In this document: one piece after another, positions 8,901-55,946 of the stretch
Layout of the letters: every line of letters begins with the position of its first letter
How positions within the stretch are numbered: position 1 is the first letter of the stretch
Source: Oopsacas minuta
Taxonomy: Eukaryota; Animalia; Porifera
Length of the DNA: 64,000 nucleotides
Direction of reading: 5' to 3'
NCBI GenBank assembly: GCA_024704765.1
Contig: JAKMXF010000332.1
Coordinates: 731,886 to 795,885 of the forward strand
Program-made: the position numbers and the translations under genes
The notes under the pieces: model-generated
Databases searched by the model: none
What the model was told of the DNA's origin: nothing
The model's input: the letters and a program-made list of their open reading frames with translations, nothing else

Positions 8901-9469
8901 AGCGATATCTACTCAGTAGCGTTTGTTAGACAAGTATTATGGATAAGTAATATGGCAGTTTTGCTAAAGTGTGCTAACTTAGATTAGGGTCTCGGAATTA
9001 GGGCTTAAAAGCCTAAAAGTTATTGAACCTCCGTTGTACTAGCGCCTCTACTTGCTAGGTCGCTGCGCAACAGGCGGTCGTATACTCAGTACTTCGTTGC
9101 TCGAATTTAGTTAAGTATACATTGGCTACATTCTTAGTGATTTGGATCATAACCCAAGGGATATATTCGGAACTACTTGGCTCGAGTTCAGGAAATAGAG
9201 GAAAAATTTCGAATTTGTTATCCATTGGTCCAACTAAAGGAACTAATAAAGCTTTCAGTAGTCACACTACAGCAGCTAAGCTATGAATCTCACCAATACG
9301 TGCTTCTATGATTATCAAATTATAAGAAAATGTCGAAATTCAAAAATTTTCATTTCGGATGAAGTACAAATTCAGCTGAGTTATTTGGTCAAAGTAATGA
9401 CTTTGAGACAATTGACACATTGAAGGGTACCCGTGACTCAAATTTCAACAATCTAACATTTGTTATATA

Positions 9470-10824
9470 CAGTGCCGGTCAAAAAGAATTGCTCAAAATG
9501 AATGTATACAGTATAGTAAATGTCAAATTGTATACACTGACCAGATAGTTGAATTCTTGCGAAACCATACTCAGCCATATGTATTTTGACAAGTAACACA
9601 CCAACACAGCTAATCCATTCATTATATTTGCACAACTTACAGTTTTTATTTTGTATTCTTTATTTTCCAATTTATCTGTTTTTATCGAATTTTCAATGCC
9701 TTCTAAACCCCTAATTTCCATTGAAAATCGAGCCAACCTGATCCTACTTTCAGAAAGTGGCCATACTCAGAGGGAGGTAGCTAAAATGGTTGGGTGTAGC
9801 CAAAAAAGTGTAGCTGATATCCTTAAGAAACACAGGCTGACTGGCACGGTAAGAGACCTCGCTATTCCGGGTAGGCCTCGTGTCACAACCAAAAGGCAAG
9901 ACAATTTATTGGTCAGAAAATGCAAAAAGGATCGATTTAAGACTGCTACTCAGATCAAAGCTGAAGTGTTATCAGAATATTCGATAAAACTTTCCACTTC
10001 AACAGTTCAGAGAAGGTTACGAGGGGCTGGACTGTTCGGACGAAAACCGCAAAGGAAGCCCCGCCTTACTACCAAGCACAAAAGAGACCGACTTTCCTTC
10101 GCAAGATCGCACAAGAATTGGAATACTGAAGAATGGGCAAGAGTTGTGTTCAGTGACGAATCTAGGTTCCTTCTGTATACTAATGACGGGAGAGCCTACG
10201 TCAGGAGGATGAAAGGGGAGGAGTTCTCAGAGAGGTGTCTTCAAAAAACTTGCAAGTTTGGTGGAGGTGGCATCATGGTTTGGGGATGCTTTTGCTGGAG
10301 TGGCGTAGGACTCTTGTGGAAAGTATCTGGGAACCTCAAGACAAATTCCTACATTGATATATTGGAAAATGCACTAATCCCAAGCGTTGATTTGCATTCT
10401 CTACATTCTGACTGGACCTTTCAGCAAGACAACGCCCCATGCCATAAGTCAAAGGGTACTAAGCAATGGTTTGGTGAGCAAAAAATAGAGGTTATGAATT
10501 GGCCTGCTCAGTCACCTGATCTAAATCCGATTGAGAATCTCTGGGATCACATTTCCCTCAGAATTCAAGAGAAAAGCCCATCCAACCACTCAGAGTTGTG
10601 AAATGCCATATTAAGCACTTGGGATAGCATCGACATTAACAGGCTCCATACTCTAATTGAGAGTATGCCGCAAAGATGTAAAGCTGTAATTCAAGCAAGA
10701 GGAGGTACTACTAAATACTAACAACAATTTACTTGATTATAATAAAGCATTATTGTTAAAATCAGTCATAGATATAAGAATTTGGGGTAAATTTATTCTG
10801 AGCAATTCTTTTTGACCGGCACTG
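9470..10824 (+). mobile_element. Tc1 (DD34E) transposon, full length
   Basis: Perfect 26-bp TIRs cagtgccggtcaaaaagaattgctca, TA on both flanks, 1355 bp. Confidence 0.96.
9696..10721 (+). pseudogene. Tc1 transposase, 341 codons, with one premature stop (TGA 10599-10601)
   Basis: FSDESRF, FQQDNAPCH, SPDLNPIE give D-34-E spacing; the frame continues after the TGA as NAILSTWDSI..RGGTTKY*. Confidence 0.93.
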
Positions 10825-11074
10825 TATATTTATATTTAAATTGGCTGGGCAGTGGGGGATAATGTGATTTTGAAATACCAAAGGTGACAGGTATGTCATA
10901 ATATCGTAATAGATGTGAGTTTAGGGAATTTGAATATCTTTCAGTTAATCCAAAACGAATACACTAATCCGTTATTATGAGGGGTAAAATTTCTATCGGC
11001 CATCCATTTCATACCAAAATCCAACAATTCATAAAGTAATTTCACTGATAGATATTTGTAGAAGTTGACAACTA

Positions 11075-11187
11075 CAGGGTGATTTTCTAAAGGTGTAACT
11101 TTACAATTTTTGTATTATATCTAGATTTTTTGTAATTCAATTGTTTCCTTTTGAGAGAATGATCCTTTTTCACATACATTTTCTATA
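11075..11187 (+). mobile_element. 5' end (TIR and leader) of the rosa/DD41D element whose body is at 18474-19715
   Basis: TA|cagggtgattttctaaaggtgtaact matches the TIR at 18474 at 23/26, in the same orientation. Confidence 0.8.
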
Positions 11188-12392
11188 CGAGGGTCAGTCC
11201 AAAAGTTTTGTCGTACAAATGTTCTATTTTGTCTTCAATCAAATAAATACAACACTATACAGTCATGAGACAAAAGTATTCGACCACACAAATATATTGT
11301 CATAAATTGTATACTCTTTCCCGCTCCTATATATTGTGTAGTCTATATTCGTAGCTGCAATCTAGTAATTTGCATAGAATAACATGTTTTTCAAGAATTT
11401 CAAAAAATATTTTCGATTTACACTTTTTGAAGGTGTTAATTATTAATAATTATTAGATTTTTATTGATAATCAAAATATGTGGTAATTCAAATCTTATTA
11501 AGAATCTATAATTTCTGACTTGATATTTGAATTCTACTTAGGCGAGTTACCCCAGATAGAAATTTCCAATGGGATTAAACAATTTTACCAAAGTTAAAGA
11601 AGAATTTCAATTTGTGCCACTACAAGGAAATAAACTAGGGTTATGAGGAATAAATCAAAGTAATATTTTCGAATGATATGACTATGCTAACCCTTGAATT
11701 CTAAAATAACCTCTTGGTAGCGGCCACTTGTGCCACCTTGGGCAAAAGTTGGCACAAATTGAACAAATTGAAATTCTTCTATAACTTTGGTAAAAATTGA
11801 TCAATCCCATTGGAAATTTCTATCTGGGGTACCTCGCCTACATAGAATTCAAATATCAAGTCAGAAATTATAGATTCTTAATAAGATTTGAATTACCACA
11901 TATTTTGATTATCAATAAAAATCTAATAATTATTAATAATTAACACCTTCAAAAAGTGTAAATCGAAAATATTTTTTGAATTTCTTGAAAAACATGTTAT
12001 TCTATGCAAATTACTAGATTGCAGCTACGAATATAGACTACACAATATATAGGAGCGGGAAAGAGTATACAATTTATGACAATATATTTGTGTGGTCGAA
12101 TACTTTTGTCCCTTGACTGTATACTTAGATATATATAATGGCTCTGCTATTAATTTGAGCCATATTCAACACTTATTTCCTGAGTAACGCTATTTTATCC
12201 ATAAGCCTATACACAGATTCTATTATTACTGAATGGAACTGGAAAAAAGGGATTTTAGAGCCATGATGTTTTATGACTTTATGCGTAAGATATCAGTGGA
12301 GCAGAGTCATGATAACTTGGTGGAAGCTTTCCAAGATCAAGCTCCATCTAAGCGTACAGTGGAGCGTTGGTTCTAGATTTCAGGAGGGGTAG
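11188..12392 (+). mobile_element. 5' half of a mariner (TIR, leader, N-terminal transposase), interrupted by a foldback MITE
   Basis: TA|cgagggtcagtccaaaagttttgtcgtaca is identical to 19718; MELEKRDFRAMMFYDF..APSKRTVERW from ~12232. Confidence 0.85.
11260..12119. mobile_element. Tc1-type foldback MITE with ~360-bp inverted arms
   Basis: Arms ~11260-11618 and ~11745-12119 are near-perfect reverse complements; termini cagtca...tgactg; TA TSD; no ORF. Confidence 0.92.
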
Positions 12393-14108
12393 TGTCACAA
12401 CAGTTTCTTCATAAATTGGTGATTTCTTAGTCCCTAAAAAGTTTTCATCTAAAGATTTGAATGAACTCCATGCTGCTTTCTCGACAGAATTTAGACATGC
12501 TTCGAAGCTTAGATCCTTGAATAGTTCTCTAATTTGGGGTCCTATAAATACCTCTTCCTTGATTTTAGCATCGTTGACCTTTGGAAATTTGTCCTTGAGG
12601 TATTTGAAGCCTTCTCCTTCTTTATTATATTTTACTATTGCCTTTACGAAGTTTTTCATCAAACCCAGTTTTATGTGTAGAGATGGTAACAGAATTTTCT
12701 CCGGATTTACTAAGGACTGACAACTTACTCTTTATACCAGCAGTTAATTGATGCCTTAGAGGCCACTCCTTAACTATATATTGGGATTGCCTTGCTCTAC
12801 TATCCCACTCACACAGAAGCAACAATATTTCGTGTATCCAGGTTGCATACCCAACAAAAGTCCAATTACCTTCAGATCACCACAGATGTGTCAATTGTAA
12901 GAGTCATGTCTGATCAGTTCAATAAGATATCCATATTCTCATGAGACTCCTTCATGTGTACTGAATGACCTATCTGTATGGATCGTAATACATTACCTTT
13001 GTGAAGTAAGAATGCCTTGAGGCTGTACTTAGAAGAATCAATGAAGAGAAGTCACTCTAATGGTTCGTGTTGAACACCTAATAACTCCGTCACACGACCC
13101 ACATTGTTACAATAACAAAGAGACCCCTGTATTTCAAAATGTACAGAGAAATCACTTTGGTGGGTTCTGAAAATGAAACTTTATTTCCTCATCCAATAAG
13201 TTCCAACCTTTCAATCTTGACCGAAGCAATTCACTTTGATCTTTTGTCAAATTCAAGTATCTAACCAAATCATTCAGCTCACTTTGATTAATGATGTGGG
13301 GAAGTCTTTTTTTATCAGGTGGCATAGGCGGAGGTATAATTTCCTCATCATCTTGATCTAACATAGCATATTTTACAGTATCGTCATCAAAGGAAACTTT
13401 CTTAGGCTTAGGTACTTCCAATCTGTAGAATGCTCAACAGGACGAATCGCAGATTGAAGATTGGGATAACATATATTCTTTTTGGTCTTAGAAGTGATTC
13501 CTATTATATCAGTCAAACAGAAATAACAATCAGTATAATGATCTCTTGGTTCCCCCCATATCATGGGAGCAGCAAATTGCATTGAAGTACGTGAGCCATT
13601 TAGCCATCTACTAAGTTCTATTGCCCATTTTAAGCAACAAAAATGTGGTGCCCAAGGCTTATGTGATCACCAATCTTGCAACTGAAATATTGCTCATATC
13701 CCTTGTTGTGTACTAGGGGAGACATGTCTCTTAGCTGAAATTTTGTAGTAAATTCTCTAGAAATATAACAGAAAGAATCGGTTGGGCTTGAACATCGACG
13801 AGACATTATTGAAAGAAAGAAATACAAATACAATCAGATAATCTCCTCTTGAAAGAGCAAATAATATTCTATTTATTTTTAAGAAAATTTGAAATGTTAG
13901 ACAATATATACGGAAGGTGTTAATTCATATACAATTATACACTTTATAGAGGTCTATGGAAATATGATTTTGGAAATTTCCGAATTTTACAGAATCTCTG
14001 CATGATAGAGAAAAACTGATTGGATATTTGGAATCAGGGTACTGGAATACATAAGAAACACTACCCTGTATCCCAGAAACAAAAATGATGAAAATTTGTT
14101 GGACAGTG
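12390..14108 (-). mobile_element. 5' portion of a Chapaev3-like (CMC) transposon, decayed
   Basis: CAC-starting long imperfect TIR ending at 14108 with TTA flank; fragments MSRRC..DSFCYI, WGEPRDHYTDCYFC, FLLCEWDSRA, KEEVFIGPQIR. Confidence 0.8.
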
Positions 14109-14111
14109 TAA

Positions 14112-15951
14112 TCGATAAAGATTCTCAAATCTCCACTCTTTTTCGTTACAAATACAGCAGGAGAACAATATAGACTGCTCGATTCTGTTATGATACCTCT
14201 CTCCAACATTTCAGAAATTTGCTTCCTTATCTCGGCCCTATAATTCTGAGGAATGGGTCAAGCAGGTAATTTACGGGCAACCTATCGGTGACAGGAATTC
14301 TGTGAGTAGTGATTTGTGTAGTTCCTGGAATGGATGAAAATAACTCCTTACAGTGGGACAATATGTCACTGTAATCTTCGAATAGGGGGTATCTCATAAG
14401 TTGCCATCTTGATATACATCGGAACCATGCAACCCTCCTTTAGTTCATCGTCATCTGTAGTTGAATAGACAATTATAGTGCCCTGATCCTCTTCCGTAGA
14501 AACATATACGTATTCTCTATCCCTCTCACATGCTCCGAGCATCTTGGCTTTGCTCAGTTGGTGACTCTGTATGCAGTCCTTGTTGAAGTCCAATTCCAAT
14601 TTATTTTCCATTATAAAATCTACTCCCAATAATAAGTCACAAATTATAGTTGGAGTTATGAAAAGATCTTGATAGACCTCCAGTAATCCCATGGTTACTT
14701 GAAGCTGACTCTTCCTTGAACAGGCAAATTTCCATTTGTTGTGACAAGACTAGGAAATGTTTTGTTAGTAGAATTGCCACTTCTTGCTAACAATGCTAGA
14801 TTCTTCGTTATCAAACTGATGATCCAGAATCTAGCATAAGGGTAGTAATGATTGAGTTGACTTTACCAGAAACCAGAACCGTTTTCGTAGCCACTTTTCT
14901 CGAGCCACTGATGAAACTTCTTCCCTTGTGTATCTTTCTTGAGCCAAATGTATTGATTGCGTATCGGAATGGCGGCTTAACATTTCGATCCTTTCATGTT
15001 TAAAGGAATGTGTGGGCAATCTTTGACTAGATGAGGAGAACTACAGCAAGTTAAGCATGTAGCATATGATCTAGCATCTTACACCACCCTTGTTCTACTG
15101 TTGCGTGCGATACAACCCTTTCTTCCACATTTGAAACATACGATTGATTTCCTGTTATTTGATTCGGTTACAGCTGCTGTAGACATTGGCCCTGTAACTG
15201 TAGACGACCCTTCGGCCTTTAGAGTTTCTAATTGATGGGGTAGTTCTGAAATAGATTGATCCAAATTGGCAATCGTGTCTCAGGACTCTGAATTTCTAAT
15301 GCTTCTTGGATTAGCCTGTCCTTCCTGAATTTTTGATTCTTTAATCGCTGAGCCTATAATTTCAGATTGTTTCTCTCGTAAGTCATTAATACTTTCGCTT
15401 TTCCAACTGCATCTTTGAGAGTCTTTATCGAGGTGTTCAACTCAATTTCTCTGGACATTTGTGGCGGCAATCCCATGATAAATCGATGGAATAAGAGTTG
15501 TTCTTTGGCTTCTGCTGCTAAATCAGGGAGTGCCCGATTATTCAATTTTTTCAATTCATAAGCCTATAGTTATACTGACTCTCTGGGAAATAAAAATCTC
15601 TTGGTAAACGAGTCCATTACAATGAATTTCTCTTCTTCTGTCACTAGAGCTTTTGAAAAGCAGCAGTGACTAATCCGTAATCTTTTCCATCATCCATTGG
15701 AACGTCCTTATACGCAATTAATTTTTCACCTTTAAGTCTGGTTGCCAATTTGAGTGACCTTTGTTCCCGTGTCTATCCATTAGCCATTGAACATATTTCG
15801 AAGTGTTCTAACCATTCGTTAAATCTCCTGCTCAAAGATGCTGGGCATTGCTAACTGATTTTCTGCCATTTCGAAATATCGACTCTCTGCTACCAATGTT
15901 ATGTACCCAAGTTACTGAAGTTAATCAATTACAATAATTTATACATATAAC
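14112..15951 (-). mobile_element. 5' portion of a Gypsy LTR retrotransposon (LTR edge, PBS, gag, protease, RT start), decayed
   Basis: PBS at 15885-15895; gag ATG 15869; knuckle CFKCGRKG; protease MLDSGSS (~14830); RT SPAVFVTKKSGDLRIFID. Confidence 0.85.
15885..15895 (-). promoter_or_regulatory. primer-binding site complementary to initiator tRNA-Met
   Basis: TGGTAGCAGAG on the minus strand, 1 nt after an LTR-like ...TAACA end; complements the tRNA-iMet 3' end CTCTGCTACCA. Confidence 0.8.
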
Positions 15952-18473
15952 ATTAAAAGCTCATGACAAATAACTACATGAATATGTCTAGTTATTACTC
16001 CATAATTTCCAATAGAGAATAACTTATCTCAGTTAATTTATTCAATCGACTCTGTTACACAATGATAGAATGAAATTAGTATTCAGCAACACTTTAACAA
16101 TATTAGGCGGAATTATAAATGGGGGACTGTAATTGAGCATATTATGTTTGGTACATTAGCTCACATTAATGTAAGTTATGTAAATGCATCTGATATAGAT
16201 CCATCTAAGTAGGTGATAGCTGATGTTTATAATTAGAATAAAGTGGGTATACAAAATGATGCGATCTTTGAAAGCAAATCACTGACCGTATACTTTTCTG
16301 GAACATCTCGTAATCTTTACCGTGCTGTGTACCCTAGTTTATTTAATTCACTTCAAACTACAAGATTGATAACTCTCTTAGCCCTTGTTTCATTTATAAT
16401 GGGTTCAAATAATTATTATATATTGCATTAATTAGTTGTTATTTCACTTTGTTTCTGGATAAGATTCGACGAATGACCTATGATTAAGTGTGCGAGTATT
16501 TGGCTCCTAGAGGTGTACTTTAGGCATTGACCATATCTCATGATAAGTGTGCCGGCATTTGGCTTCTCTTCGGTGGAGTGTGCTGTATTTGCATTTGGCT
16601 TATTTTGAAATATGATTAGTTCGTGATTCTCTGGACCATTATTAGTAACTAGGTTTGATGCAATTATATACAGTATTGATGATAATGACTTATACGAATA
16701 TAATTATGATGACTTGGGCCCATTAATAATAAAATTAAGATTTTTATGGACTCTAGATAAGGTGTAATATCTGGCCTAATTTTTTAGTATCTATATATTA
16801 CACCTAATAAATCTATATTTCCTATTTAGGCAATTCATAAATGTAATGAGGTGGGTCCAAAGCGCACCCATTGATTTTTATCAACAATCCTGAGGGCAGA
16901 AATTACCTTAAGTTAGAATTGTACTAAATATCAAGAATTTTTTATATAATAAGTTAGAATGTGATGAAGAACAGATATTGATATTACTATTGTAATTATT
17001 AAGAACTTTAGTTAACTGAAGTTAGAGACTCAGATAGTCAAATTTGAGGAGGGCATATAAATCTAATGCAACTGACGTATGGGTGGCTGAAGGAACTGTT
17101 TCAGGCAAATAATTTTGACTTGAAGGAGGGAGAGCTGAACGAACTAATGAAATTGTAGGGACGACTAGGGGAACTGGAGCTAAGGGGGTCGCAACAGAAG
17201 CAACTTCATTGTCGCCAAATAACTATTGGAAACAAATTGAACATTATTTGGAGTGGATAATCAGTGTAAATTGTAAATATATTATTCGATGGATTTAAAT
17301 CCGAGCGAAGCGAAGAAAACATAAAAAATTACAACTTGTGCCAACAGCTTGGTCCATTAAAATCAATTTGTTTAATATGGGCACTATGTGTAATGAGATT
17401 ATAACTAACCTCTCATTGTGCCTCCAATTAATAGTGCCACTTTGAAAACAAATATCCTTTAATAGACTGAAATGTTGGCGCAGGTTGAATTATTAGATAT
17501 TGTCTACTGTGCTGACTATACTTTAGTATAGTGGCCCAGTATTGAAATGGTTGCCTATATTTTCATTTTTTCTCCGTGATAGCCCTGCGTCCAAAACTGG
17601 ATAGAATTAAAGTGATATATGGTGTGAGAATTATTGAAGTTATTCGTCGGATGTGGTTCTCCCCTTTGCTAATCGATCGGAAATCAAGTGCGACTATTTC
17701 ACATTGGTCGAACTTTTGTCTGGCCTCTAGCAAAAATTTTGAAAGGAAAGGTGCCAAAATTTTCTCACCTATCGAAAGTGAAAAAATCTACAACTTCATA
17801 CTCTTCTAGAATAATATATTGGTTATTTGTTTTTGCTCAAAGTAAATGAAAATTATTCATTATATAGCACTTTGTCATCGGTAATATTTCTATTGTTCTT
17901 AGATGTTTAATATTTATTAGTTAAACAATAGGTATTTTAGGTCTGTATATAATCTGGATTCATTGAATATCTACATTTAACGGTAGCCTGAATTACATAT
18001 ATAATATTTTTCAAAGTAATGATGAATAATTTACAATGTATGTATTTCTCCGAATATATAACCCTTGAATAATCATAGAAGATTGTACCAAACAGCAAAA
18101 GGGCGTATTTCAAACCCTGATTAAATAATGAGATCTGTGCCATGGAAAGGGATACAAGCTAAAATCAATGGATAATGAAGTCAATAAGATTATAGAAATT
18201 AAAAAATCAAAATTTTGATATCATTATAGCAAACTGAATTTGAATACTAGATCCACAATGACACTGTTTAGAACTTACCCACAATATCAGCCTGACAATA
18301 AATTAGGGTGTCAGAGCCATATTGTAAAAGGAGGATTGGAGGCAGGGCCGGATTTAAGTAGTTCGGGCTCTAGGCTATTGCTGGGCCTATTCAAAACACT
18401 ATTCTTTAATATTAGAAAATATGTTAACAGTTTACTTGGTAGGTGGTCGATCTTTAATCTTTATTACTACATA

Positions 18474-19715
18474 CAGGGTGATTTTTTGAAAGTGTAACTT
18501 TTAAACTTTTCTGAACGTGAATTATCTCACAAATTTGAAGCTCTCAACCTACTCTACTATCCTTCCTAAGATATGTAAATTTAATAATTAACCTGAACCA
18601 TAATTAACTAATCAAGTTGATGTTCAAAGTGACTACCTCCATACTTCACACAAGTTACCGCTCTTTTCATAAATTTTCCACAACTTTATGCAACATCTTT
18701 AAGTCCATATTACTTGCTGTATCTTCAATTACTTGTCTTAATTCGTCTATACTCTTGGGTTGCTTTTCAAACACCTTTTGTTTGCATAGCCCCAGAAAAA
18801 GTAGTCGAGAGGGTTTAAATCAGGTAAATATGGTGGCCAAATTCTATCGGTTAAATTTGATAGAATTCCTCCATGAAACTTTTCTCGCAGAAAATCCAAA
18901 ACTGTTTTGCATGTATGTGGTCTAACACCATCTTGTTGAAACCACAATCCCTTATGTGTCGAAATATACGGAATTTGAGGCTAAAGCACTTCCTTGAGCA
19001 TTTTGAAGTAAGACTCCCCATTCACAGAAACTGTTTTTCCCTTTAGATCGATAAACCAATGGACTTTGAGCATTTTTCCATCCACAAAGCCTGCCCAACA
19101 CATAATTTTCTCCCCATGAAGCCTCCTAGATGCCACAGAAATATTGGGATTGATCGGAGCCCAAATCCTGTCGTTTGTTGATTAGAAGATTGCTGGAGTA
19201 CGAACTATTACTCGTCACTGAATATTAATTTTGGAAAAATTCTGGAGATTGTTGGATCACCCACGAACAAAATTCCATTCTTTCAGCATGCTCTGTTCAG
19301 TTATATGGTGAACTCTTTGAGCACGATAAGGCCTCCATTTTAATGTTCTTTCAAGATTATTGTGAACTTTGGAATAGCTGAACTCTAGTTTCCGGCTCGC
19401 ATTACGAATTAATCCTTGGTTTTTCTTCAATGTGAATTCTAACCTGATTGACATGTTCAGGGGAAGAATCCTACCACCTTTCTTCTTAGGTGACTTGAGA
19501 AAATTTGTATACACTCTAGCGAAATGAATGAGTCTGTACTTTAGGCGATTTCGTCCTTTGATAGCAAAACGTTGACAAAATTTCCTTTTTACTACTGTTG
19601 GAGACGGATTTTGTCCGAATTCTAAAATGATAAATTTTAGTTTTTGCTTTGTAAAGGTTGAGTTAATTTGTCTTTTTCTCATCTGGATCACAATGAATAT
19701 CAAAAATCTATTTTA
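18474..19715 (-). mobile_element. rosa/Visitor (DD41D) Tc1/mariner body and 3' TIR, decayed
   Basis: WFQQDGVRPH..WPPYLPDLNPLDYFFWG has D-41-D spacing; N-terminus MRKRQINSTFTKQKLKFII; TIR TA|cagggtgattttttgaaagtg. Confidence 0.85.
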
Positions 19716-19717
19716 TA

Positions 19718-20647
19718 CGAGGGTCAGTCCAAAAGTTTTGTCGTACACAAAAAGTATAATAACAAATTTAATCAAACTTTCACAGTTTCTCAAAGTAACG
19801 ACCACAACAATCCATGCAAAGTTGCAAACGATGAAACCAACTGTCGAAATAACTATGCCATTTTTCCTCTGGCAGGCTCCAAAGGGCTTGTTCAAATGCC
19901 AGACGAGCCTCTTCATGACTCTCATACCTTATTCCACGGATCTTTTCATTGATTGTTGGGAACAAGAAAAAGTCGCATGGAGCTAAATCTGGACTGTAAG
20001 GTGGATGCGATACCAACTGGACCGAGTTTCAGCCAGGAAGTCCAATGTTTTGGCTGCTGTGTGTGCAGATGCATTATCGTGGTGAAGGAGAAGTCCTCTG
20101 ATACCGGTCTTAGGGTGACGAGAACTCCAAGCTTCGAAAGCCTTGGGTAGGCAATTGTTAATGTACCAACCAGCATTGACGGTACGACGATCCTCGAGAG
20201 GAATTATTGCTACTGGGCCAGTCTTACAGAAAAAAGCAGTCACCATCTTCTTCCCAATGCTGCGAGCCCGGCGAACCTTAACAGGGGGATCTTCGCCAGG
20301 AAACACCTAGATTGAAGATTGCCGCTTTGTTTCCGGATCGTAGTGATAGATCCCTGTCTCACCACATGTTAGTATGTCGTAAACTCGTTTAGGCTCTCCT
20401 CCTTTAAATTTCTTGAGCATAAACTTGCACCATTCTACCCTTGCCTCTAATTGCATTTCAGAGAGATTATGAGGATCCATCGGGCCGCAAGCCTTCTGAC
20501 ACCAAAATAATCATGTAGAATAGTATTGATGGCGGCTTTCCTGATCTTGAGGGTCTCAGCAAACTGCTCATAGTTAATGCGGCTATCCTCTCTGATTAAT
20601 GTCTCAGCAGCAGCAATTGTCTCTGGAGTGACGGCGGTTGATGGTCG
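19718..20647 (-). mobile_element. 3' half of a mariner (DD34D), decayed
   Basis: RPSTAVTPETI, HHDNASAH, HPPYSPDLAPCDFFLFP, GRYFEKL*; TIR at 19718 flanked by TA. Confidence 0.9.
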
Positions 20648-21157
20648 TTGATGCATTCAGAACAATGGGATGTAACATGTCTCTAAAAATACACTATCTT
20701 CACTCACATTTGCAATTCTTTCCCGAAAATCTAGGTGCTGTGAGTAATGAACATGGTGAAAGATTTCATCAAGATATAACACAATGGAAAGGCGTTACAA
20801 TGGAAAGTTTTTTTCAAACATGATGGTTGATTATTGTTGGTCACTAAAAAGAGATATTCCTGATGCCACATACAAAAGAAAATCATATCCCAAGCATTTC
20901 TAATTAGTATAATAAATGCTAAACCAATTGACAATTTTCATTGTAATTAAATCATAAGTATGCATTTGATTAGCCAAGCTGAAGAGATATATTTATAGGA
21001 ATACACTGGGGCAATGATAAAATCAAAATATTGAATTTTTCAAAATCTTTGCCTCATAGAGAAAACTGATTGGATAATTGGAATCAGGGTGCTTGAATAC
21101 ATGAGAAACACTAGTGTATTCCAGAAGCAAAAAATGATGAAAATTTGTTGGATAGTG
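20647..21157 (+). mobile_element. 3' portion of the Chapaev3-like transposon
   Basis: VDAFRTMGCNMSLKIHYLHSHL..SNEHGERFHQDI; TIR ...ttggatagtg|TTA, homologous over ~110 bp to the TIR ending at 14108. Confidence 0.85.
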
Positions 21158-21160
21158 TTA

Positions 21161-22063
21161 TCGTCGACTTAATGCCAAAACCTACAAGGATTCTTATCCT
21201 TTACCCTACCAGACGAAGTATAAGAAAGAATCGAGGGTAGTAAAGTATTCTCAAATTGGGTCTTAAAATCGGTTACTGGCAGGTTCCACTACATTGTCAT
21301 GATCGTGAAAGTCAGCGTTTTCTCCAGGTCCAGGAATGGGATTATATCAGTTTAATGTAATTCCATTTGGACTTACCAATGCTCCTGGAATATTTCAAAG
21401 AATGATGGATTCTGTTTTACGATGGCTGGAAGAATTTAGTTTCCATTTGTTGACGAGATTTTGATATTTTCGCCTGATGTTGCACAACGTCCAAATCATT
21501 TGTCTAGAGTTTTAAGAAGAATTCAAAAAGCTGGTTTAACCCTGCGAGGATCTAAATGTGAGGTTGAATATTTGGATCACGTATCTTTTCAAAAAGTGTT
21601 ATGGCTCCGAACCCTTCCCAAATTTCGGCAATCTGAGAATGGTCTCGTCCTCAATATTTCAAGGATGATCGTCAATTTCTTGGACTAGCCAACTATTACC
21701 GTCGTTTTGTGAGGAATTTTTCATATATTGGGAGTCCATTGAATCAGCTACTTCAGAAGAATACATCTTTTGATTGGGATTCAGAATGCGAGAACTTAAG
21801 TATTGTTTAGAGAACGCTCCAGTTCTAAGATGTCCATCTATTAATAAAGAATACTCATTGCATACAGATGCTTCAGGGGTTGGTATTGTAGCCATCTTGG
21901 AAGAGTGTGATAGACTTATCGCTTATTCGATTTGAACATTGAGTTGATGCAGAAAAGAAGTATTCAACAATTGAAAGCGAATGTTTGGCACTTGTGAATA
22001 CATTGAAGAAGTTCAGACAATACCTATTGGGAAAACATTTTACGTTATGCTGTGACCATAGAT
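21161..22063 (+). pseudogene. Gypsy RT (C-terminal part) and RNase H remnant
   Basis: RRLNAKTYKDSYPLP, FNVIPFGLTNAPGIFQRMM, LHTDASGVG, YSTIESECLA, KFRQYLLGKHF..CDH. Confidence 0.9.
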
Positions 22064-24502
22064 CAGGTGTTTTCAACCTTGTGCACCATACGCCCGTCTT
22101 ATTGATGTGGGAAATACTCACGCCCCTCATAATAACGATACCAAATTAAATATTAGAGCTTATACTTAATATGACATATAATCATACATACATAATTATG
22201 AATGAAATTTTCATTTATGTCCTTAATGTGAGGATTGAAACTGTTTTTTTTTCAACAAGTTGAGAAATCCTTGGCTCGGGTTTAAGAAAGAAATCATCTT
22301 AATTCATGTTCAACATCCAATCTAGTTCAATTTTCGTTTTAATTATTAGTAGACTGGAGAAACCTGTTTCACTTAAGTAGGTAGAAGGAAATGGTAGTAG
22401 TGCCTTAATTGCGATTTGTGATATCAATGGATAGGTGTGTAACATGGAACACCAAAACTGTGGAACACTCATCGTTGAAAATACAACCTTTGCTCCCGAG
22501 TCATTAATCAAATTTATAAATTCCTCTTGGGCTTCATCCTGATCATCGGTAATACAATCTTCCACTTTTTGCATAAAAGGGTTTCGAACTAAATTATAGT
22601 CTGATTCCTAATTTCTGGGAAATATCGCGTAAAATCATCGTTCATAGCTTTGAGGTGTAAAATAATTGCATCTCTCAACTCTTCAGGTAATCGATGATCA
22701 TGGATTTCAATCAAATTTGTGACCCTAGAAAACATGCCCATTCTCCCATCTTCGATTTTCCTTATCCACAGGTCGAGCATACTTTGGAAAGCAGTTAGCT
22801 TCTCCACAAAATCCATAATGTAACTTTCTCTTCCTTGTAATGAAAGGTTGAGGATATTTAGCTTTTTGAAGATATCAGCGAGAGAAGAGAGGGTCAGGAG
22901 CCAAGAATTATCGTTAAATAGTGCTATAGTCTTCTTTATTTTGTATTTTGAAAAACTCATTAACTTCTACATGCAAATCAAGAAGACGCTTAAGTACATT
23001 TCCCTTTAACAACCAACGAACCTTTGTTTGGTACAAACCGTTATGTGCGTCGCATCCCTATCAAGGCAAAGATTGCCGAAAAGCCGTGTATTCAGAGCAG
23101 TTGATTTAATGTAATTTACAATTTTGATGGAAACTTGTAAAACACATTTCAGTGCATCTGACAAAGTCTTTGATGCCAATGCTTCTCTATGTATCATACA
23201 GTGATTTCCTGTAACATACGGTGCAGATTCTTTTATGTGCTTCATGAATCCCAAACGACAACCAAGCATTGCTGGAGCACCATCTGTGCAAATAGATAAT
23301 AATTTTTCATATATAAGGCCTTCACGTTCGATAAAGGAATTTAATTTATTGTAAATATCGATTCCACGTGTTTGCTAGTCAATTTGTTCACAAAATAAAA
23401 ATTCATCTTTAAAATCCGATTTATAGATGTACCGTACGAAAACAAGGAGTTGAGCACATGATGCACCATCTGTAGGCTAAACCATCCTGAGAGGGATTCT
23501 TTAATCTCTCCCACAACCTGATTCTTAATATCCTCAGAAAGATCCATAATTCGACGCTGCACAGTGTTATCGGACAAAGATATTTTATTAAGTTTTCTCT
23601 CTGCATCAGTGCAATCATAAGGCGTACAATGTCTTTTGTGCATGGAAGTATTAATTCTTCTCCAATTGTATGAAGTTTCTTTGCTTTTGTAATCCGTAAT
23701 GATACAATATAAGATGCTTCTAGAGCTGATTTTGAACTAGTACGAAAATCACCAGTAGCATCGAGCTTAGTCCTCTTTACAGTGTTCACCTTTTGTTGAA
23801 AGAAAGAAAGAACTTTATCCTTATAATTGGAATGTTCCTTTTCAAAATGTCTTATTTTAGCTGGAATGGTTTCATAGATTCAGCTGACAATACTTTGAAA
23901 CAAATTACATATTGTGGCTTTACAATACCACGACTGTTGATACTCTAAATCCAAGTTTTAAATAGTCTTCGGAATAAGTTCGCTTTTTAATGTTGCTTTT
24001 CCAGCCATCTTAGCAGTGGTTTTTGAAAGCTGGATTTTGTAAAAATTGAAGTACGAAGATAAAATGAGAAATATCAAAGGATATACGTAACAAAATATAC
24101 CTAATTGGAGTATTTATAGATTTAACTTGTGAAATATCCATGTATAGTCAGTATGGAAATGATTCCTATTGTTTCCTACTGTTGATATTAAGTCTAGACA
24201 CCTCAAGTTCTAATGGATAAGATGCCAGTATTGTCAGGAAATACACTAACAATGTCATATAAACGTAATTAAAACCATTGTACATGAACTGAAAGCACAT
24301 TGCGCGCGTATATAGCATGTACATTGCACATAGCAATGCACACGCAATACACGCACAATGCATTTTAAATTCAGCTAAAAATTGATAATTTAAACAATTT
24401 TTGACTTATTAATAGGTAAATTTTAACGATGTTATATAAATTATCTGAACTTTTCGCGACCCACCTAGAAAGCCTTAGCGATCCCCAGGTTGAAAACACC
24501 TG
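22064..24502 (-). mobile_element. hAT Buster/Charlie-type transposon (ZBED8/SCAND3-like transposase), decayed
   Basis: Perfect 16-bp TIRs caggtgttttcaacct; transposase ~24008-22223 with ASYIVSLRI, HCMIHREALASK, LPFPSTYLSETGFS; 8-bp flanks differ. Confidence 0.92.
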
Positions 24503-52235: not shown

Positions 52236-53769
52236 CAGGGGCATTCAATATATACTAATCACCGTATATTTTTAATGAAATAGCAGTTCTAAGCTAGTAT
52301 TTCTCAGTGCAATTATATAGAACCATATTTCAACTTTCTAACAAAACTTAGAGAGAGTTGATCACTTAATTATTTCCTAAGTTTCAGTTATTTTTAGAAA
52401 CCTACATTTTCTCCTTTACATTTTCATGGCTTCTTGTCCAAATTTTTCGGAACTTGAACAACGAACGTACATCAAATTTCGCACCATTCTCGAAATCCCT
52501 CCAGTCTATTCATAACGAGTTGGCAACGATATGTGGAGAAGATACTTTATCGTATTCAACTGTCAGAAGGTGNNNNNNNNNNNNNNNNNNNNNNNNNNNN
52601 NNNNNNNNNNNNNNNNNNNNNNNNNNNNNNNNNNNNNNNNNNNNNNNNNNNNNNNNNNNNNNNNNNNNNNNNNNNNNNNNNNNNNNNNNNNNNNNNNNNN
52701 NNNNNNNNNNNNNNNNNNNNNNNNNNNNNNNNNNNNNNNNNNNNNNNNNNNNNNNNNNNNNNNNNNNNNNNNNNNNNNNNNNNNNNNNNNNNNNNNNNNN
52801 NNNNNNNNNNNNNNNNNNNNNNNNNNNNNNNNNNNNNNNNNNNNNNNNNNNNNNNNNNNNNNNNNNNNNNNNNNNNNNNNNNNNNNNNNNNNNNNNNNNN
52901 NNNNNNNNNNNNNNNNNNNNNNNNNNNNNNNNNNNNNNNNNNNNNNNNNNNNNNNNNNNNNNNNNNNNNNNNNNNNNNNNNNNNNNNNNNNNNNNNNNNN
53001 NNNNNNNNNNNNNNNNNNNNNNNNNNNNNNNNNNNNNNNNNNNNNNNNNNNNNNNNNNNNNNNNNNNNNNNNNNNNNNNNNNNNNNNNNNNNNNNNNNNN
53101 NNNNNNNNNNNNNNNNNNNNNNNNNNNNNNNNNNNNNNNNNNNNNNNNNNNNNNNNNNNNNNNNNNNNNNNNNNNNNNNNNNNNNNNNNNNNNNNNNNNN
53201 NNNNNNNNNNNNNNNNNNNNNNNNNNNNNNNNNNNNNNNNNNNNNNNNNNNNNNNNNNNNNNNNNNNNNNNNNNNNNNNNNNNNNNNNNNNNNNNNNNNN
53301 NNNNNNNNNNNNNNNNNNNNNNNNNNNNNNNNNNNNNNNNNNNNNNNNNNNNNNNNNNNNNNNNNNNNNNNNNNNNNNNNNNNNNNNNNNNNNNNNNNNN
53401 NNNNNNNNNNNNNNNNNNNNNNNNNNNNNNNNNNNNNNNNNNNNNNNNNNNNNNNNNNNNNNNNNNNNNNNNNNNNNNNNNNNNNCCTGATATAGCCCCA
53501 TGTGACTTCTGGCTGTTTAGAAAACTCAAAGATAACCTCTCCGGACGCGAATTTGAGGATCGGCTCAGCCTCGGTCGGGCAATTTACAGATACCTTGAAG
53601 TCATTCCCAAGGATGAGTACAGAAAGACATTTGAAAATTGGATTAAAAGGCTAGATTCAGTTGTAGCGTATAAAGGAGACTACTTTGAACATTCATAGCA
53701 AAAATTACCAACTTTACACAAGTATCTATAGTTTTAGATGGTATGATTAGTATTTATTGAATGCCCCTG
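52236..53769 (+). mobile_element. mariner transposon spanning the assembly gap
   Basis: TA-flanked TIRs caggggcattcaata(t/a)atactaatca; MASCPNFSELEQRTYIKF at 52426; PDIAPCDFWLF..GDYFEHS* ending at 53698. Confidence 0.9.
52573..53485. other. assembly gap (913 N)
   Basis: Run of N. Confidence 0.99.
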
Positions 53770-55946
53770 TAAATATTGCTAAGTACCGCAAGGTTAAGGG
53801 AAGAAGAGCACTGATTTATCCAAGTATACCTTCATCCATTGCACCTGTTCCTCACAGTGAAACTTTACCAGTTCCAAAACCACCAGCAACTGTAAGTAGT
53901 TTTGTTTTTTAATATTAGGCTACGCTAGCTTATATGCTGTAAGGGTGACCTACAATCTGCATCTTATGTTTTATTCTTGTCATTTTAGTTGGAGTTTAAT
54001 ACTGAATGTGATGACTCGATATCAGGTTAAACTTCGGATGTTGAGGAGGAGTATCTCCAATCAACAAGTGCAGATCGTCATTATCCTCCTAGGAGAGAAT
54101 TAGATAACTTAATACGAGATCTGCAACTAACAAAATCTGCAGTAGAGCAATTGACGTCAAGATTAACCGAGTGGAATTTGCTGCGTGATGATTGAAAATA
54201 ACTGCTTACAGGAAGAGGCACTTGGACTATTCTGTTTACTTTGATGTAATACAGGATCTGTGCTATTGCAAAGATGTGAATAGTTTGTTTGATGCTGCTG
54301 GAATTGAACATGACCCTCCTCAGTGGCGACTTTTTATTGACAGTTCCACCAAAAGTCTTAAAGGAGTTTTATTTCATAATGGGAACAAATATCCGTCAAT
54401 TCCACTTGCTTATTCAATACAAATGAAAGAAGACTATGAAAATGCCAAGCAACTACTGCTTAAAATGAACTATGCTGAATTTAACTGGCAGCTCTGTGGT
54501 GATTTTAAGATGTTGGGGTTTTTGTTGGGACTGCAGGGTGGTTACACCAAATATTCATGCTTTCTTTGTTTGTGGAACAGCAGAGCTGATGGAGAGCATT
54601 ACAGGAAGATTCAATGGCCGCCAAGAAAAGAATTATGCCAGGAAAGTACAATGTCATCAAAGAGCCACTTGTAAGCCGGGAAAAGGTTTTACTACCACCT
54701 CTTCATATAAAAGTAGGTCTAATAAAGCAATTTCTTAAAGCTTGGATTTTGAAGGAGAAGCTTTTCAAGAAATCCGTGCAATGTTTCCAAAATTATCAGA
54801 TGCTAAACTAAAAGGAGGAATATTTGTTAGCCCCCAAATAACCACCATGTTAAAGTCAAGAACCCTGGAGGATAAAATGACCGAAACAGAAAGAAAGGCA
54901 TAGCAAGCATTTCGAGATGTAGTTAATGGCTTTTTAGGAAATAACCAAGAGCCAAATTATGAAGAGATAGTGAGTACTCTGATCTACCAAAATATGGGAT
55001 GTCGCATGTCGTTGGAACTTCATTTTCTATCCTCTCATCTTTACTTCTTTCAAGAAAATTTGGAGGATTTCAGCGAGGAACATGGTGATAGATTTCATCA
55101 AGATATTCAGCTAATGGATAGAAGGTATCAAGGCCGCTGGGATAGTACAATGATGGGCGATTACATGTGGTTTTTGATAAGGGAAGACATTTCTGGTCAC
55201 AAAAGTAAAGCTCGTTCAACAGTTCATTTTTGAAGTATTTTAACTCTCTAACATGAGTGCGTTTTGTATTCTCTAGGACTTGTAATCAGCAATGTACTGT
55301 TTGGTAGTGATTTTCATGTTCAAATACAATTATCACCACATCACTACGTGTTTAAATCTATTACAAGAGCTGTAGATAAATTTGCATATAATGAACAACA
55401 CAACTTGTTGAGAGAAAGCAAAAAGTGTAAATAGGTCAAAAAGCATTGAAAATATGGAAAACTAACACAATTCTTGATTTCCGCGACCCAAAAAACATAA
55501 GGAGACATCAAAAATTGAAGCCAAACAAAAATTGTGTTACGTAGTGATATGATTCTGAAATCCGACACCAGGTGGAGTTCACAGTTAAATAGGTTGAACG
55601 GATAGTTAAGATCAATGTTCCTGTTCAAAAATCATAGCTAGGCCTTCATGAAATCTCAGGAATTTTCCAATCTCTGACCCCAATAAAATCAGCGATAGAT
55701 GCATTATGCAGACGTGATGCAAATTTGATTATGTCAGAGGCAATTTTCAAGTTTTAATTGGATGATATTCAATGTTTTCATTCATTTTTTAGTGGGAAAG
55801 TCCAGGGAGCTATTGAGCGACGCATTGTATAGGAGCTTTATAAATATGATTCTATAATTTTGCAATACTTTCATAATCCTCAAGCACAACTATAACTGGA
55901 AAGAAAGTCCAGCTGACAGATAGATATTACTGCTCAAGGATATGTA

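Follow-up and report, generated by a model that had tools for sequence, protein, structure and literature searches.

An apparent 8.3-kb inversion with breaks in two unrelated transposase genes of a glass-sponge transposon graveyard

Inversions produced by breakage and rejoining through non-homologous end joining (NHEJ) have been characterised at breakpoints in Drosophila and in humans. A second group, known from the Drosophila melanogaster and subobscura lineages, derives from staggered breaks and carries inverted duplications (PMC4965816), while transposon-mediated inversions by ectopic recombination are exemplified by Galileo in Drosophila buzzatii (PMC2775673). Here, we analysed a 64,000-nucleotide stretch (the window) of the glass sponge Oopsacas minuta (contig JAKMXF010000332.1), in which positions 12389-20647 (8,259 bp), within a transposon graveyard read in one assembly, appear to form an inverted segment. 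We regard this 8.3-kb inversion as a commonplace scar of breakage and rejoining within junk DNA.

Misoriented element pieces and the breakpoints

The original prediction held that three pairs of terminal inverted repeats (TIRs) lie in direct rather than inverted orientation, and this was confirmed within the window: the pairs belong to rosa (11073-11111 / 18472-18510, 85% identity), to mariner (11170-11217 / 19700-19747, with the last 30+ bases identical) and to Chapaev3 (13982-14114 / 21033-21163, in three blocks of 85-94%). In all three (3/3), one partner lies within 12389-20647 and the other outside; in other words, each pair straddles a breakpoint. The pieces were aligned to reference copies elsewhere in the genome (L003 for mariner, L014 for Chapaev3, L026 for rosa and L031 for the Gypsy-like element), and a flipped copy of the window was made solely for reading both junctions. 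Alignment to intact paralogs places the true breakpoints at 12388|12389 (J1) and 20647|20648 (J2), so that the segment exceeds the proposed 12390-20646 by one base at either end. A single flip of this interval restores the collinearity of all four elements with intact copies from the same genome, and the alignments to paralogs confirmed all four restorations. The pieces are as follows.

11075-11187, plus strand: left end of rosa (DD41D Tc1/mariner) with its TIR; 94% to L026 2854-2742 over window 11074-11187; TA duplication at 11073-11074.
11188-11259, plus strand: part a of mariner (DD34D), consisting of its 5' TIR and leader; 97% to L003 1122-1196 over window 11186-11260.
11260-12119, no strand assigned: 860-bp Tc1-like non-autonomous element (MITE) in the mariner leader, with ~360-bp TIRs (CAGTC...GACTG) and a TA duplication.
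12120-12388, plus strand: mariner part b, the transposase start (HTH_48), up to J1; 96% to L003 1191-1464 over window 12116-12388.
12389-14108, minus strand: 5' 1,720 bp of Chapaev3, now inverted; CACTG terminus at 14108, inner end at J1.
14109-16063, minus strand: Gypsy-like LTR retrotransposon, gag-protease-reverse transcriptase (RT) start, now inverted; 86% to L031 769-2712; frame ...DLRIFIDY at the Chapaev insertion point.
16064-18471, no strand assigned: intervening DNA moved with the inversion, made up of a region upstream of the Gypsy-like element, a pair of high-copy repeats (17219-18123) and, adjoining rosa, 348 bp of unique sequence.
18474-19717, minus strand: body of rosa together with its right TIR, now inverted; 94% to L026 2743-1500 over window 19717-18471; TA duplication at 18472-18473.
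19718-20647, minus strand: 3' 930 bp of mariner (catalytic domain, 3' TIR), now inverted; 96% to L003 1500-2431; inner end at J2.
20648-21157, plus strand: 3' 510 bp of Chapaev3, carrying the CAGTG terminus and, as H(4)H motif, KIHYLHSH; 93% to L014 3234-3751 from window 20648.
21158-22060, plus strand: Gypsy-like RT and RNase H continuation; 87% to L031 2710-3610.

These alignments support one inversion as the explanation of all misoriented pieces, with no inversion-free alternative apparent. Four broken transposons had been proposed, and all four are indeed restored by the flip, but the inversion itself would have cut only mariner and Chapaev3; rosa and the Gypsy-like element had already been split by guest insertions, the flip just moving their pieces apart.

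Cut elements and their hosts

Mariner elements of the DD34D type are ~1.3 kb long and are marked by 34 residues between the second and third catalytic D, a TA duplication and ~30-bp TIRs. The element in the window shares the TA overlap, measures 1,269 + 35 bp and matches the HTH_48 profile in part b (E=2e-12), and four copies of the family show the 34-residue spacing, a 1-nt frameshift being present in the one in the window. Deleting the MITE and one TA regains the L003 mariner sequence and gives the exact point of MITE insertion. This MITE lies outside the inverted segment, has arms of 344 nt that are 96% identical in a repeat search, and belongs to a family of which 40 or more copies were scored, with 252 candidates. 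The final mariner base before J1 is 12388 (...CAGGAGGG), and the first one kept at J2 is 20647 (CGACCATC...); the two halves are contiguous except for 35 bp, which are present in all of the copies compared (9/9). The predicted mariner join and its size of ~1.3 kb stand, but what is missing comes to 35 bp (11 and 2/3 codons) rather than roughly 10 codons.

As for the second cut element, Chapaev3 transposons end in 5'-CAC...GTG-3', insert between A and T with duplication of a 3-bp TWA target (PMC4079192), and encode a transposase marked by C(2)C, LH and H(4)H motifs (PMC4079192, citing Yuan and Wessler 2011). The site in the window reads A-TTA|CACTG...CAGTG|TTA-T, with copies of the TTA target duplication at 14109-14111 and 21158-21160, and TTA or TAA duplications flank four other Chapaev3 copies. 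CCFLC and PPLHIKLG are found in L014 and in the 5' half in the window, and KIHYLHSH in the 3' half; termini, target duplication and, by motif reading, transposase motifs thus place the element in Chapaev3 (CMC superfamily), while a Pfam search of its protein matched no model. The 5' half (12389-14108) is 92-94% identical to 11 intact copies and its end base directly precedes the other half (L014 3233|3234); against 9-11 intact copies, the halves occupy adjacent alignment columns (10-1743 / 1744-2261) and abut exactly, with 0 bases lost. The original prediction had the frame joining as YEETVVTL|VDAFRTMGCN with the TTA duplication on both sides. The exact join and the duplications held, but because the breakpoints shift by one base, the restored junction codon is not Val but Leu (C|TT), the residue that every family copy has.

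The two halves of each cut element have diverged similarly from their family majority (2.3% vs 2.9% for mariner, p=0.56; 4.9% vs 4.1% for Chapaev3, Fisher p=0.55). Rank correlation of the halves' identities as a subfamily test (mariner rho = 0.92, Chapaev3 rho = -0.03) is uninformative because both families are star-like, and the structural evidence carries the argument.

Of the hosts, rosa elements are ~1.3-1.36 kb with short TIRs. The DD41D group is distinguished by 41 residues between the second and third catalytic D (PMC5490172). The element in the window is 1,355 bp long, has a 39-bp TIR pair and transposase remnants with the 41-residue spacing, and matches the DDE_3 profile weakly in its body. 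Its left end stops at TA 11186-11187, the mariner insertion site, and its pieces are continuous on L026 once mariner is taken out, with the 2-bp TA overlap representing the mariner target; rosa does regain its 5' end at ~1.35 kb, as had been predicted.

Ty3/Gypsy retrotransposons are ordered protease-RT-RNase H, with integrase after RNase H and flanking LTRs. The Gypsy-like element has the order DSG protease motif, RVT_1, RT_RNaseH (integrase before RT would not fit), with RVT_1 (profile positions 111-193) and RT_RNaseH / RT_RNaseH_2 matched in 21158-22060. Its pieces are continuous once Chapaev3 is taken out, the 3-bp TTA overlap being the Chapaev3 target, in agreement with the predicted reading LRIFID-Y-RRLNAK. 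All copies of this element are decayed, and in the flipped version of the window it stays interrupted and decayed as well; an LTR pair and an integrase were looked for in the window and not found, and LTR dating was dropped for want of the LTR mate. Nearby, hAT-like ORFs at 22.3-23.8 kb gave no Pfam match.

Junctions, proposed history and rival explanations

Both junctions are blunt, with 0 nt of microhomology, no filler and every base unambiguously assigned, so that the predicted 1-3 nt of overlap was not observed. The loss amounts to 35 bp at the mariner break and 0 bp at the Chapaev3 break. As predicted, both breakpoints lie inside unrelated transposase genes, at non-homologous positions; no inverted match within +-100 bp of both breaks is longer than 8 nt (shuffled range 5-11). 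Blunt junctions, non-homologous breakpoints and the 35-bp loss at one break together support end joining and exclude repeat recombination, as originally proposed. Indeed, a one-interval flip, no inverted repeats at the breaks and 0-nt junctions with a small deletion are what a two-break end-joining inversion leaves. Such bluntness is not strict proof of classical NHEJ.

We propose that the ancestral locus lay in a transposon-rich region and held two nests separated by 6-8 kb: rosa with mariner inside it, and the Gypsy-like retrotransposon with its RT gene interrupted by Chapaev3. A double-strand break in the mariner transposase gene and another in that of Chapaev3 would have released the 8,259-bp fragment (window 12389-20647), which classical NHEJ would have put back reversed. 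The Chapaev3 break would have been rejoined with no base lost, and 35 bp would have gone from the mariner break via resection or trimmed staggered nicks; alternatively, since GGG lies on either side of it in most copies, this gap could be a separate, earlier microhomology deletion coinciding with the break. The nesting establishes the predicted order, with Chapaev3 entering the Gypsy RT and mariner entering rosa, and the inversion coming last. Divergence from the family majority is ~2.7% for the mariner copy and ~4.5% for the Chapaev3 copy, which would make the inversion younger than the mariner insertion. As no host gene is involved, the event was most likely neutral. Whereas geometry, breakpoints, blunt homology-free joins and order can be read off the alignments, the repair pathway and the presence of this arrangement in the animal's germ line are inferred; taken whole, we consider the account from nested elements to inversion by classical NHEJ probably correct.

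One rival is an assembly artefact, in which the 8.26-kb piece went in with the wrong orientation or chimeric reads created the junctions, the animal having the uninverted order. Both breakpoints do fall where assemblies are weakest, in repeats of 20-45+ copies that are 91-96% identical, and the assembly is a hybrid short/long-read scaffold (SPAdes / SSPACE / GapFiller). However, a misoriented scaffold piece would have gaps or repeat homology at its edges, and there is no N gap at J1 or J2, the sole N run (52573-53485) being distant from both. In a de Bruijn-graph assembler, a join requires reads sharing k-mers across it. Since the joined positions belong to unrelated, non-homologous elements, the mariner-Chapaev join does not stem from repeat collapse and would need real reads across it. 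The junctions are also reciprocal, keeping all Chapaev3 bases and all of mariner minus 35 bp, which two independent chimeras would not give. An uninverted allele (the ancestral Chapaev3 junction plus the private variant) was not found in the assembly, which yielded only family copies with the family variant. Counting against the inversion, an exact-sequence look-up of three junction-spanning ORFs matched only the J1 ORF, and only on the assembly's own 1.37-Mb contig. On balance, we judge an artefact improbable.

About equally improbable is a real inversion for which classical NHEJ was not responsible, but rather a pathway based on replication or on polymerase theta (template switching, MMBIR or synthesis-dependent microhomology-mediated end joining). 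At J2, a direct repeat of TTGATG spans the junction (GGTTGATGGTCG|TTGATGCATT) and could hint at templated repair, its mariner-side match arising from a private T-to-A change (0/9 family copies), and GGG triplets bound the 35-bp loss in most mariner copies. Yet one near-junction private substitution is not unusual for a 2.9%-diverged copy, both junctions are free of microhomology and templated filler, and the reciprocal, nearly conservative exchange is typical of two rejoined breaks and unlike template switching.

A transposon-packed region would suit an inversion through ectopic recombination (non-allelic, between inverted homologous repeats) or through a transposase acting on element ends, TE-mediated inversions being well known, for instance from Galileo in Drosophila (PMC2775673). 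We nonetheless give such an origin very little credence: inverted homology at the breakpoints is not above chance, which rejects repeat-mediated recombination, and reading of the junctions found no TA (the mariner target), TWA (that of Chapaev3), heptamer-like sequence or element terminus at the breaks, which rejects transposase- or RAG-like site-specific cutting; neither junction holds element copies or swapped target duplications. Finally, truncated copies of the same families do occur elsewhere, but that independent truncated insertions are complementary by coincidence, with no rearrangement at all, is scarcely credible, as this would require exact Chapaev3 abutment, 35-bp mariner near-abutment, matching TA and TTA duplications and both hosts continuous across their guests, all from the same two coordinates.

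Meaning and comparison with known inversions

Alone, a neutral rearrangement in decayed transposons matters little. This end-joining inversion nevertheless offers a base-exact two-break example whose ancestral state is readable from four independent witnesses with no outgroup genome, the nested elements supplying relative ages, and it may be used as a marker for assembly checking and sponge population work. It is also one data point on whether small inversions are unusually common in a compact sponge genome. That kilobase-scale end-joining inversions are unusually dense in the glass-sponge genome is, in our estimation, unlikely; if true, such inversions would be neither isolated accidents nor assembler habits, and would point to peculiar double-strand-break repair or germ-line/soma organisation in a syncytial animal.

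Like the Galileo inversions of Drosophila buzzatii, the sponge inversion has transposons at both breakpoints; unlike them, its mariner and Chapaev3 are unrelated, share no homology at the breaks and were apparently passive targets rather than substrates. With staggered-break inversions (PMC4965816) it shares a repeat-independent origin, and the 35-bp lesion could correspond to two nicks 35 nt apart, but filled-in staggers leave inverted duplications at both ends, whereas here 35 bp are deleted and nothing is duplicated. Compared with the NHEJ inversions of Drosophila and humans, the sponge case is, at 8.3 kb, far smaller, is confined to dead transposons, affects no gene and is known from one assembly; it resembles them in its two unrelated, non-homologous break sites, blunt joins, small one-sided loss and repeat-free junctions.

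Terminal repeats and extent of the inversion

A repeat search over window positions 9000-24000 recovered all three pairs of terminal inverted repeats (TIRs) that, according to the original prediction, lie in direct rather than inverted orientation.

Terminal-repeat pairs found by the repeat search
11073-11111 and 18472-18510, direct orientation: rosa terminal-repeat pair
11170-11217 and 19700-19747, direct orientation: mariner terminal-repeat pair
Spanning 13982-14114 and 21033-21163, direct orientation: Chapaev terminal-repeat pair, in three blocks

One partner of each pair lies within the proposed segment and the other outside it, so that a single flip returns all three to inverted orientation. 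Pieces of the window were then aligned to many same-genome copies of each of the four elements. The inversion itself stands, while its limits, given originally as 12390-20646, are corrected to 12389-20647 (8,259 bp). As the plus-strand base is G at both boundaries, the narrower flip preserved the reading frames but gave G where the families have C.

The 5' piece of Chapaev3 is found on the reverse strand, from 14108 down to 12389, and its 3' piece at 20648-21157. The last base of the former directly precedes the first base of the latter in every intact copy (e.g., 3233/3234 in L014, an intact same-genome copy), and the pieces occupy adjacent columns of the multiple alignment (10-1743, then 1744-2261). 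Over the break, the family sequence reads ...GACACTAC followed immediately by TTGATGCATTC..., while in the window ...GACACTAC lies on the reverse strand and stops at 12389, with TTGATGCATTC beginning at 20648. The predicted exact frame join of Chapaev is retained, with the family residue Leu replacing the predicted Val, the interval being one base wider per side. For mariner, the 5' piece has 12388 as its final base (...TTTCAGGAGGG) and the 3' piece, on the reverse strand, starts at 20647 (CGACCATCAACC...); between them, 35 bases present in nine of nine family copies are missing in the window. A loss at this join had been foreseen, and its extent is revised from about 10 codons to 35 bp. The two halves of a split element have diverged to the same extent from its family majority: 4.9% and 4.1% for Chapaev3, 2.3% and 2.9% for mariner (Fisher p ~0.55 in each case).

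The two host elements, rosa and the Gypsy-like element, were already split by the mariner and Chapaev3 insertions, and the flip only moved their parts apart. The rosa pieces (window 11074-11187 and reverse strand 19717-18471) match contiguous positions of L026, a same-genome rosa locus, with a 2-bp overlap that is the TA target duplication of mariner; rosa thus regains its 5' end on flipping, as predicted. The Gypsy-like pieces (reverse strand 16063-14109 and forward strand 21158-22060) match contiguous positions of L031, a same-genome Gypsy-like locus, and their 3-bp overlap is the expected TTA duplication of Chapaev3. With Chapaev3 removed, the reverse transcriptase (RT) frame reads through its site, as anticipated, as DLRIFIDY / RRLNAK, comparable to DLRICIDYRRLNAK in L031. 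All four transposons are therefore collinear once flipped, but only mariner and Chapaev3 were cut by the inversion itself. On these alignments, a base-exact inversion is very well supported.

Identities of the elements and neighboring repeats

The mariner (~1.3 kb) has an HTH_48 domain and a TA duplication, with DD34D spacing seen in family copies. Rosa is 1,355 bp long and has 41 residues from the second to the third catalytic D, a spacing that is the signature of rosa (PMC5490172). Chapaev3 has CACTG...CAGTG termini, and its TTA/TAA duplications are positioned between A and T both in the window copy and in most of four other copies checked; target duplications of this kind are described for the Chapaev3 group (PMC4079192). 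Its C(2)C, LH and H(4)H motifs were all found, and its protein matched no Pfam model. The Gypsy-like element shows the order protease motif, RVT_1, RT_RNaseH, and a search of the window revealed no LTR pair and no integrase, which makes its assignment tentative. The analysis of this element covered comparisons of its copies.

The mariner is itself interrupted, at 11260-12119, by a non-autonomous Tc1-like element of 860 bp, whose terminal inverted repeats are ~360 bp long and which has a TA duplication. Its family is very abundant, with 252 candidate places, of which at least 40 were scored (88-92%). As the element lies outside the inverted segment, it may have inserted before or after the inversion. 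An intact-looking Tc1 element at 9465-10829, possibly still active, is bounded by TIRs of 42 bp with 93% complementarity and contains a 316-aa ORF with HTH_Tnp_Tc3_2 and DDE_3. At 17219-18123, two high-copy repeats of ~620 and ~285 bp adjoin each other (72-87% across at least 40 copies); some copies match on both strands, hinting at a further foldback or MITE family. Just past the Gypsy-like RNase H end (~22060), an ORF run at 22300-23800 (minus strand) resembles a decayed hAT-type transposase; its pieces had no match in Pfam. A distant Chapaev-related fragment (54493-55106; 72-74% to the Chapaev3 element studied) adjoins an N gap. Elsewhere in the assembly, contig C177 carries many Chapaev3 fragments at ~640-735 kb, some with repeated identical query ranges (e.g., 1280-1725 at both 642440 and 734718), a pattern that may reflect segmental amplification of a block containing Chapaev3.

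Origin of the inversion

At both junctions, J1 (12388/12389, joining the 5' halves of mariner and Chapaev3) and J2 (20647/20648, joining their 3' halves), alignment to family copies gave 0 nt of microhomology and no filler, in place of the predicted 1-3 nt overlap. The breaks interrupt transposase genes that are unrelated to each other, at non-homologous positions. The data are best fitted by a pair of double-strand breaks, one in mariner and one in Chapaev3, after which the intervening fragment would have been rejoined backwards by classical end joining, given two reciprocal blunt junctions, full conservation at one break and a 35-bp loss at the other. A templated-repair variant is a less likely alternative: the mariner copy has a private T-to-A change, 5 nt from J2, through which a TTGATG direct repeat stands on either side of J2 (window 20636-20653; CGACCTTCAACC in nine of nine mariner family copies versus CGACCATCAACC in the window). 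This repeat could be coincidental or could be left over from such repair; one private change is unremarkable for a 2.9%-diverged copy.

That the inversion is an assembly artefact is improbable, since a k-mer graph assembly requires spanning reads to join non-homologous sequences, and J1 and J2 form a reciprocal, nearly conservative pair that chimeric reads would not give. The window's single N run (52573-53485) is also distant from both. The assembly holding the window comprises 61,460,524 bases in 365 contigs (~36% G+C); the published Oopsacas minuta assembly (365 scaffolds, ~61 Mb, 36% G+C) was built by hybrid SPAdes from Illumina and corrected PacBio reads, followed by SSPACE, Pilon and GapFiller (PMC10280926). 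An uninverted allele of the window's Chapaev3 copy was not found elsewhere in this assembly. J1 is crossed by a 103-aa ORF (12351-12659, minus strand) running from the Chapaev3 frame into 17 codons of antisense mariner; this predicted protein in NCBI/UniRef is recorded solely from the assembly's own 1,373,860-bp contig, and is therefore a junk chimeric ORF in public annotation.

Transposase action is not indicated, as neither break coincides with an element terminus or with a target site (TA or TWA). Inverted-repeat recombination is ruled out, because inverted matches in the 100 bp around the breaks reach no more than 8 nt, within the range of shuffled sequence; the original preference for end joining over repeat recombination is thereby upheld.

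The literature gives inversions two origins, either ectopic recombination or the repair of staggered breaks (PMC4965816). The inversion reported here is an ordinary rearrangement in decayed transposons, without any gene involved, and adds another example of an already known type. It is like staggered-break inversions in its class of breakage; filled-in staggered breaks, however, leave duplications, whereas this inversion has a deletion instead.
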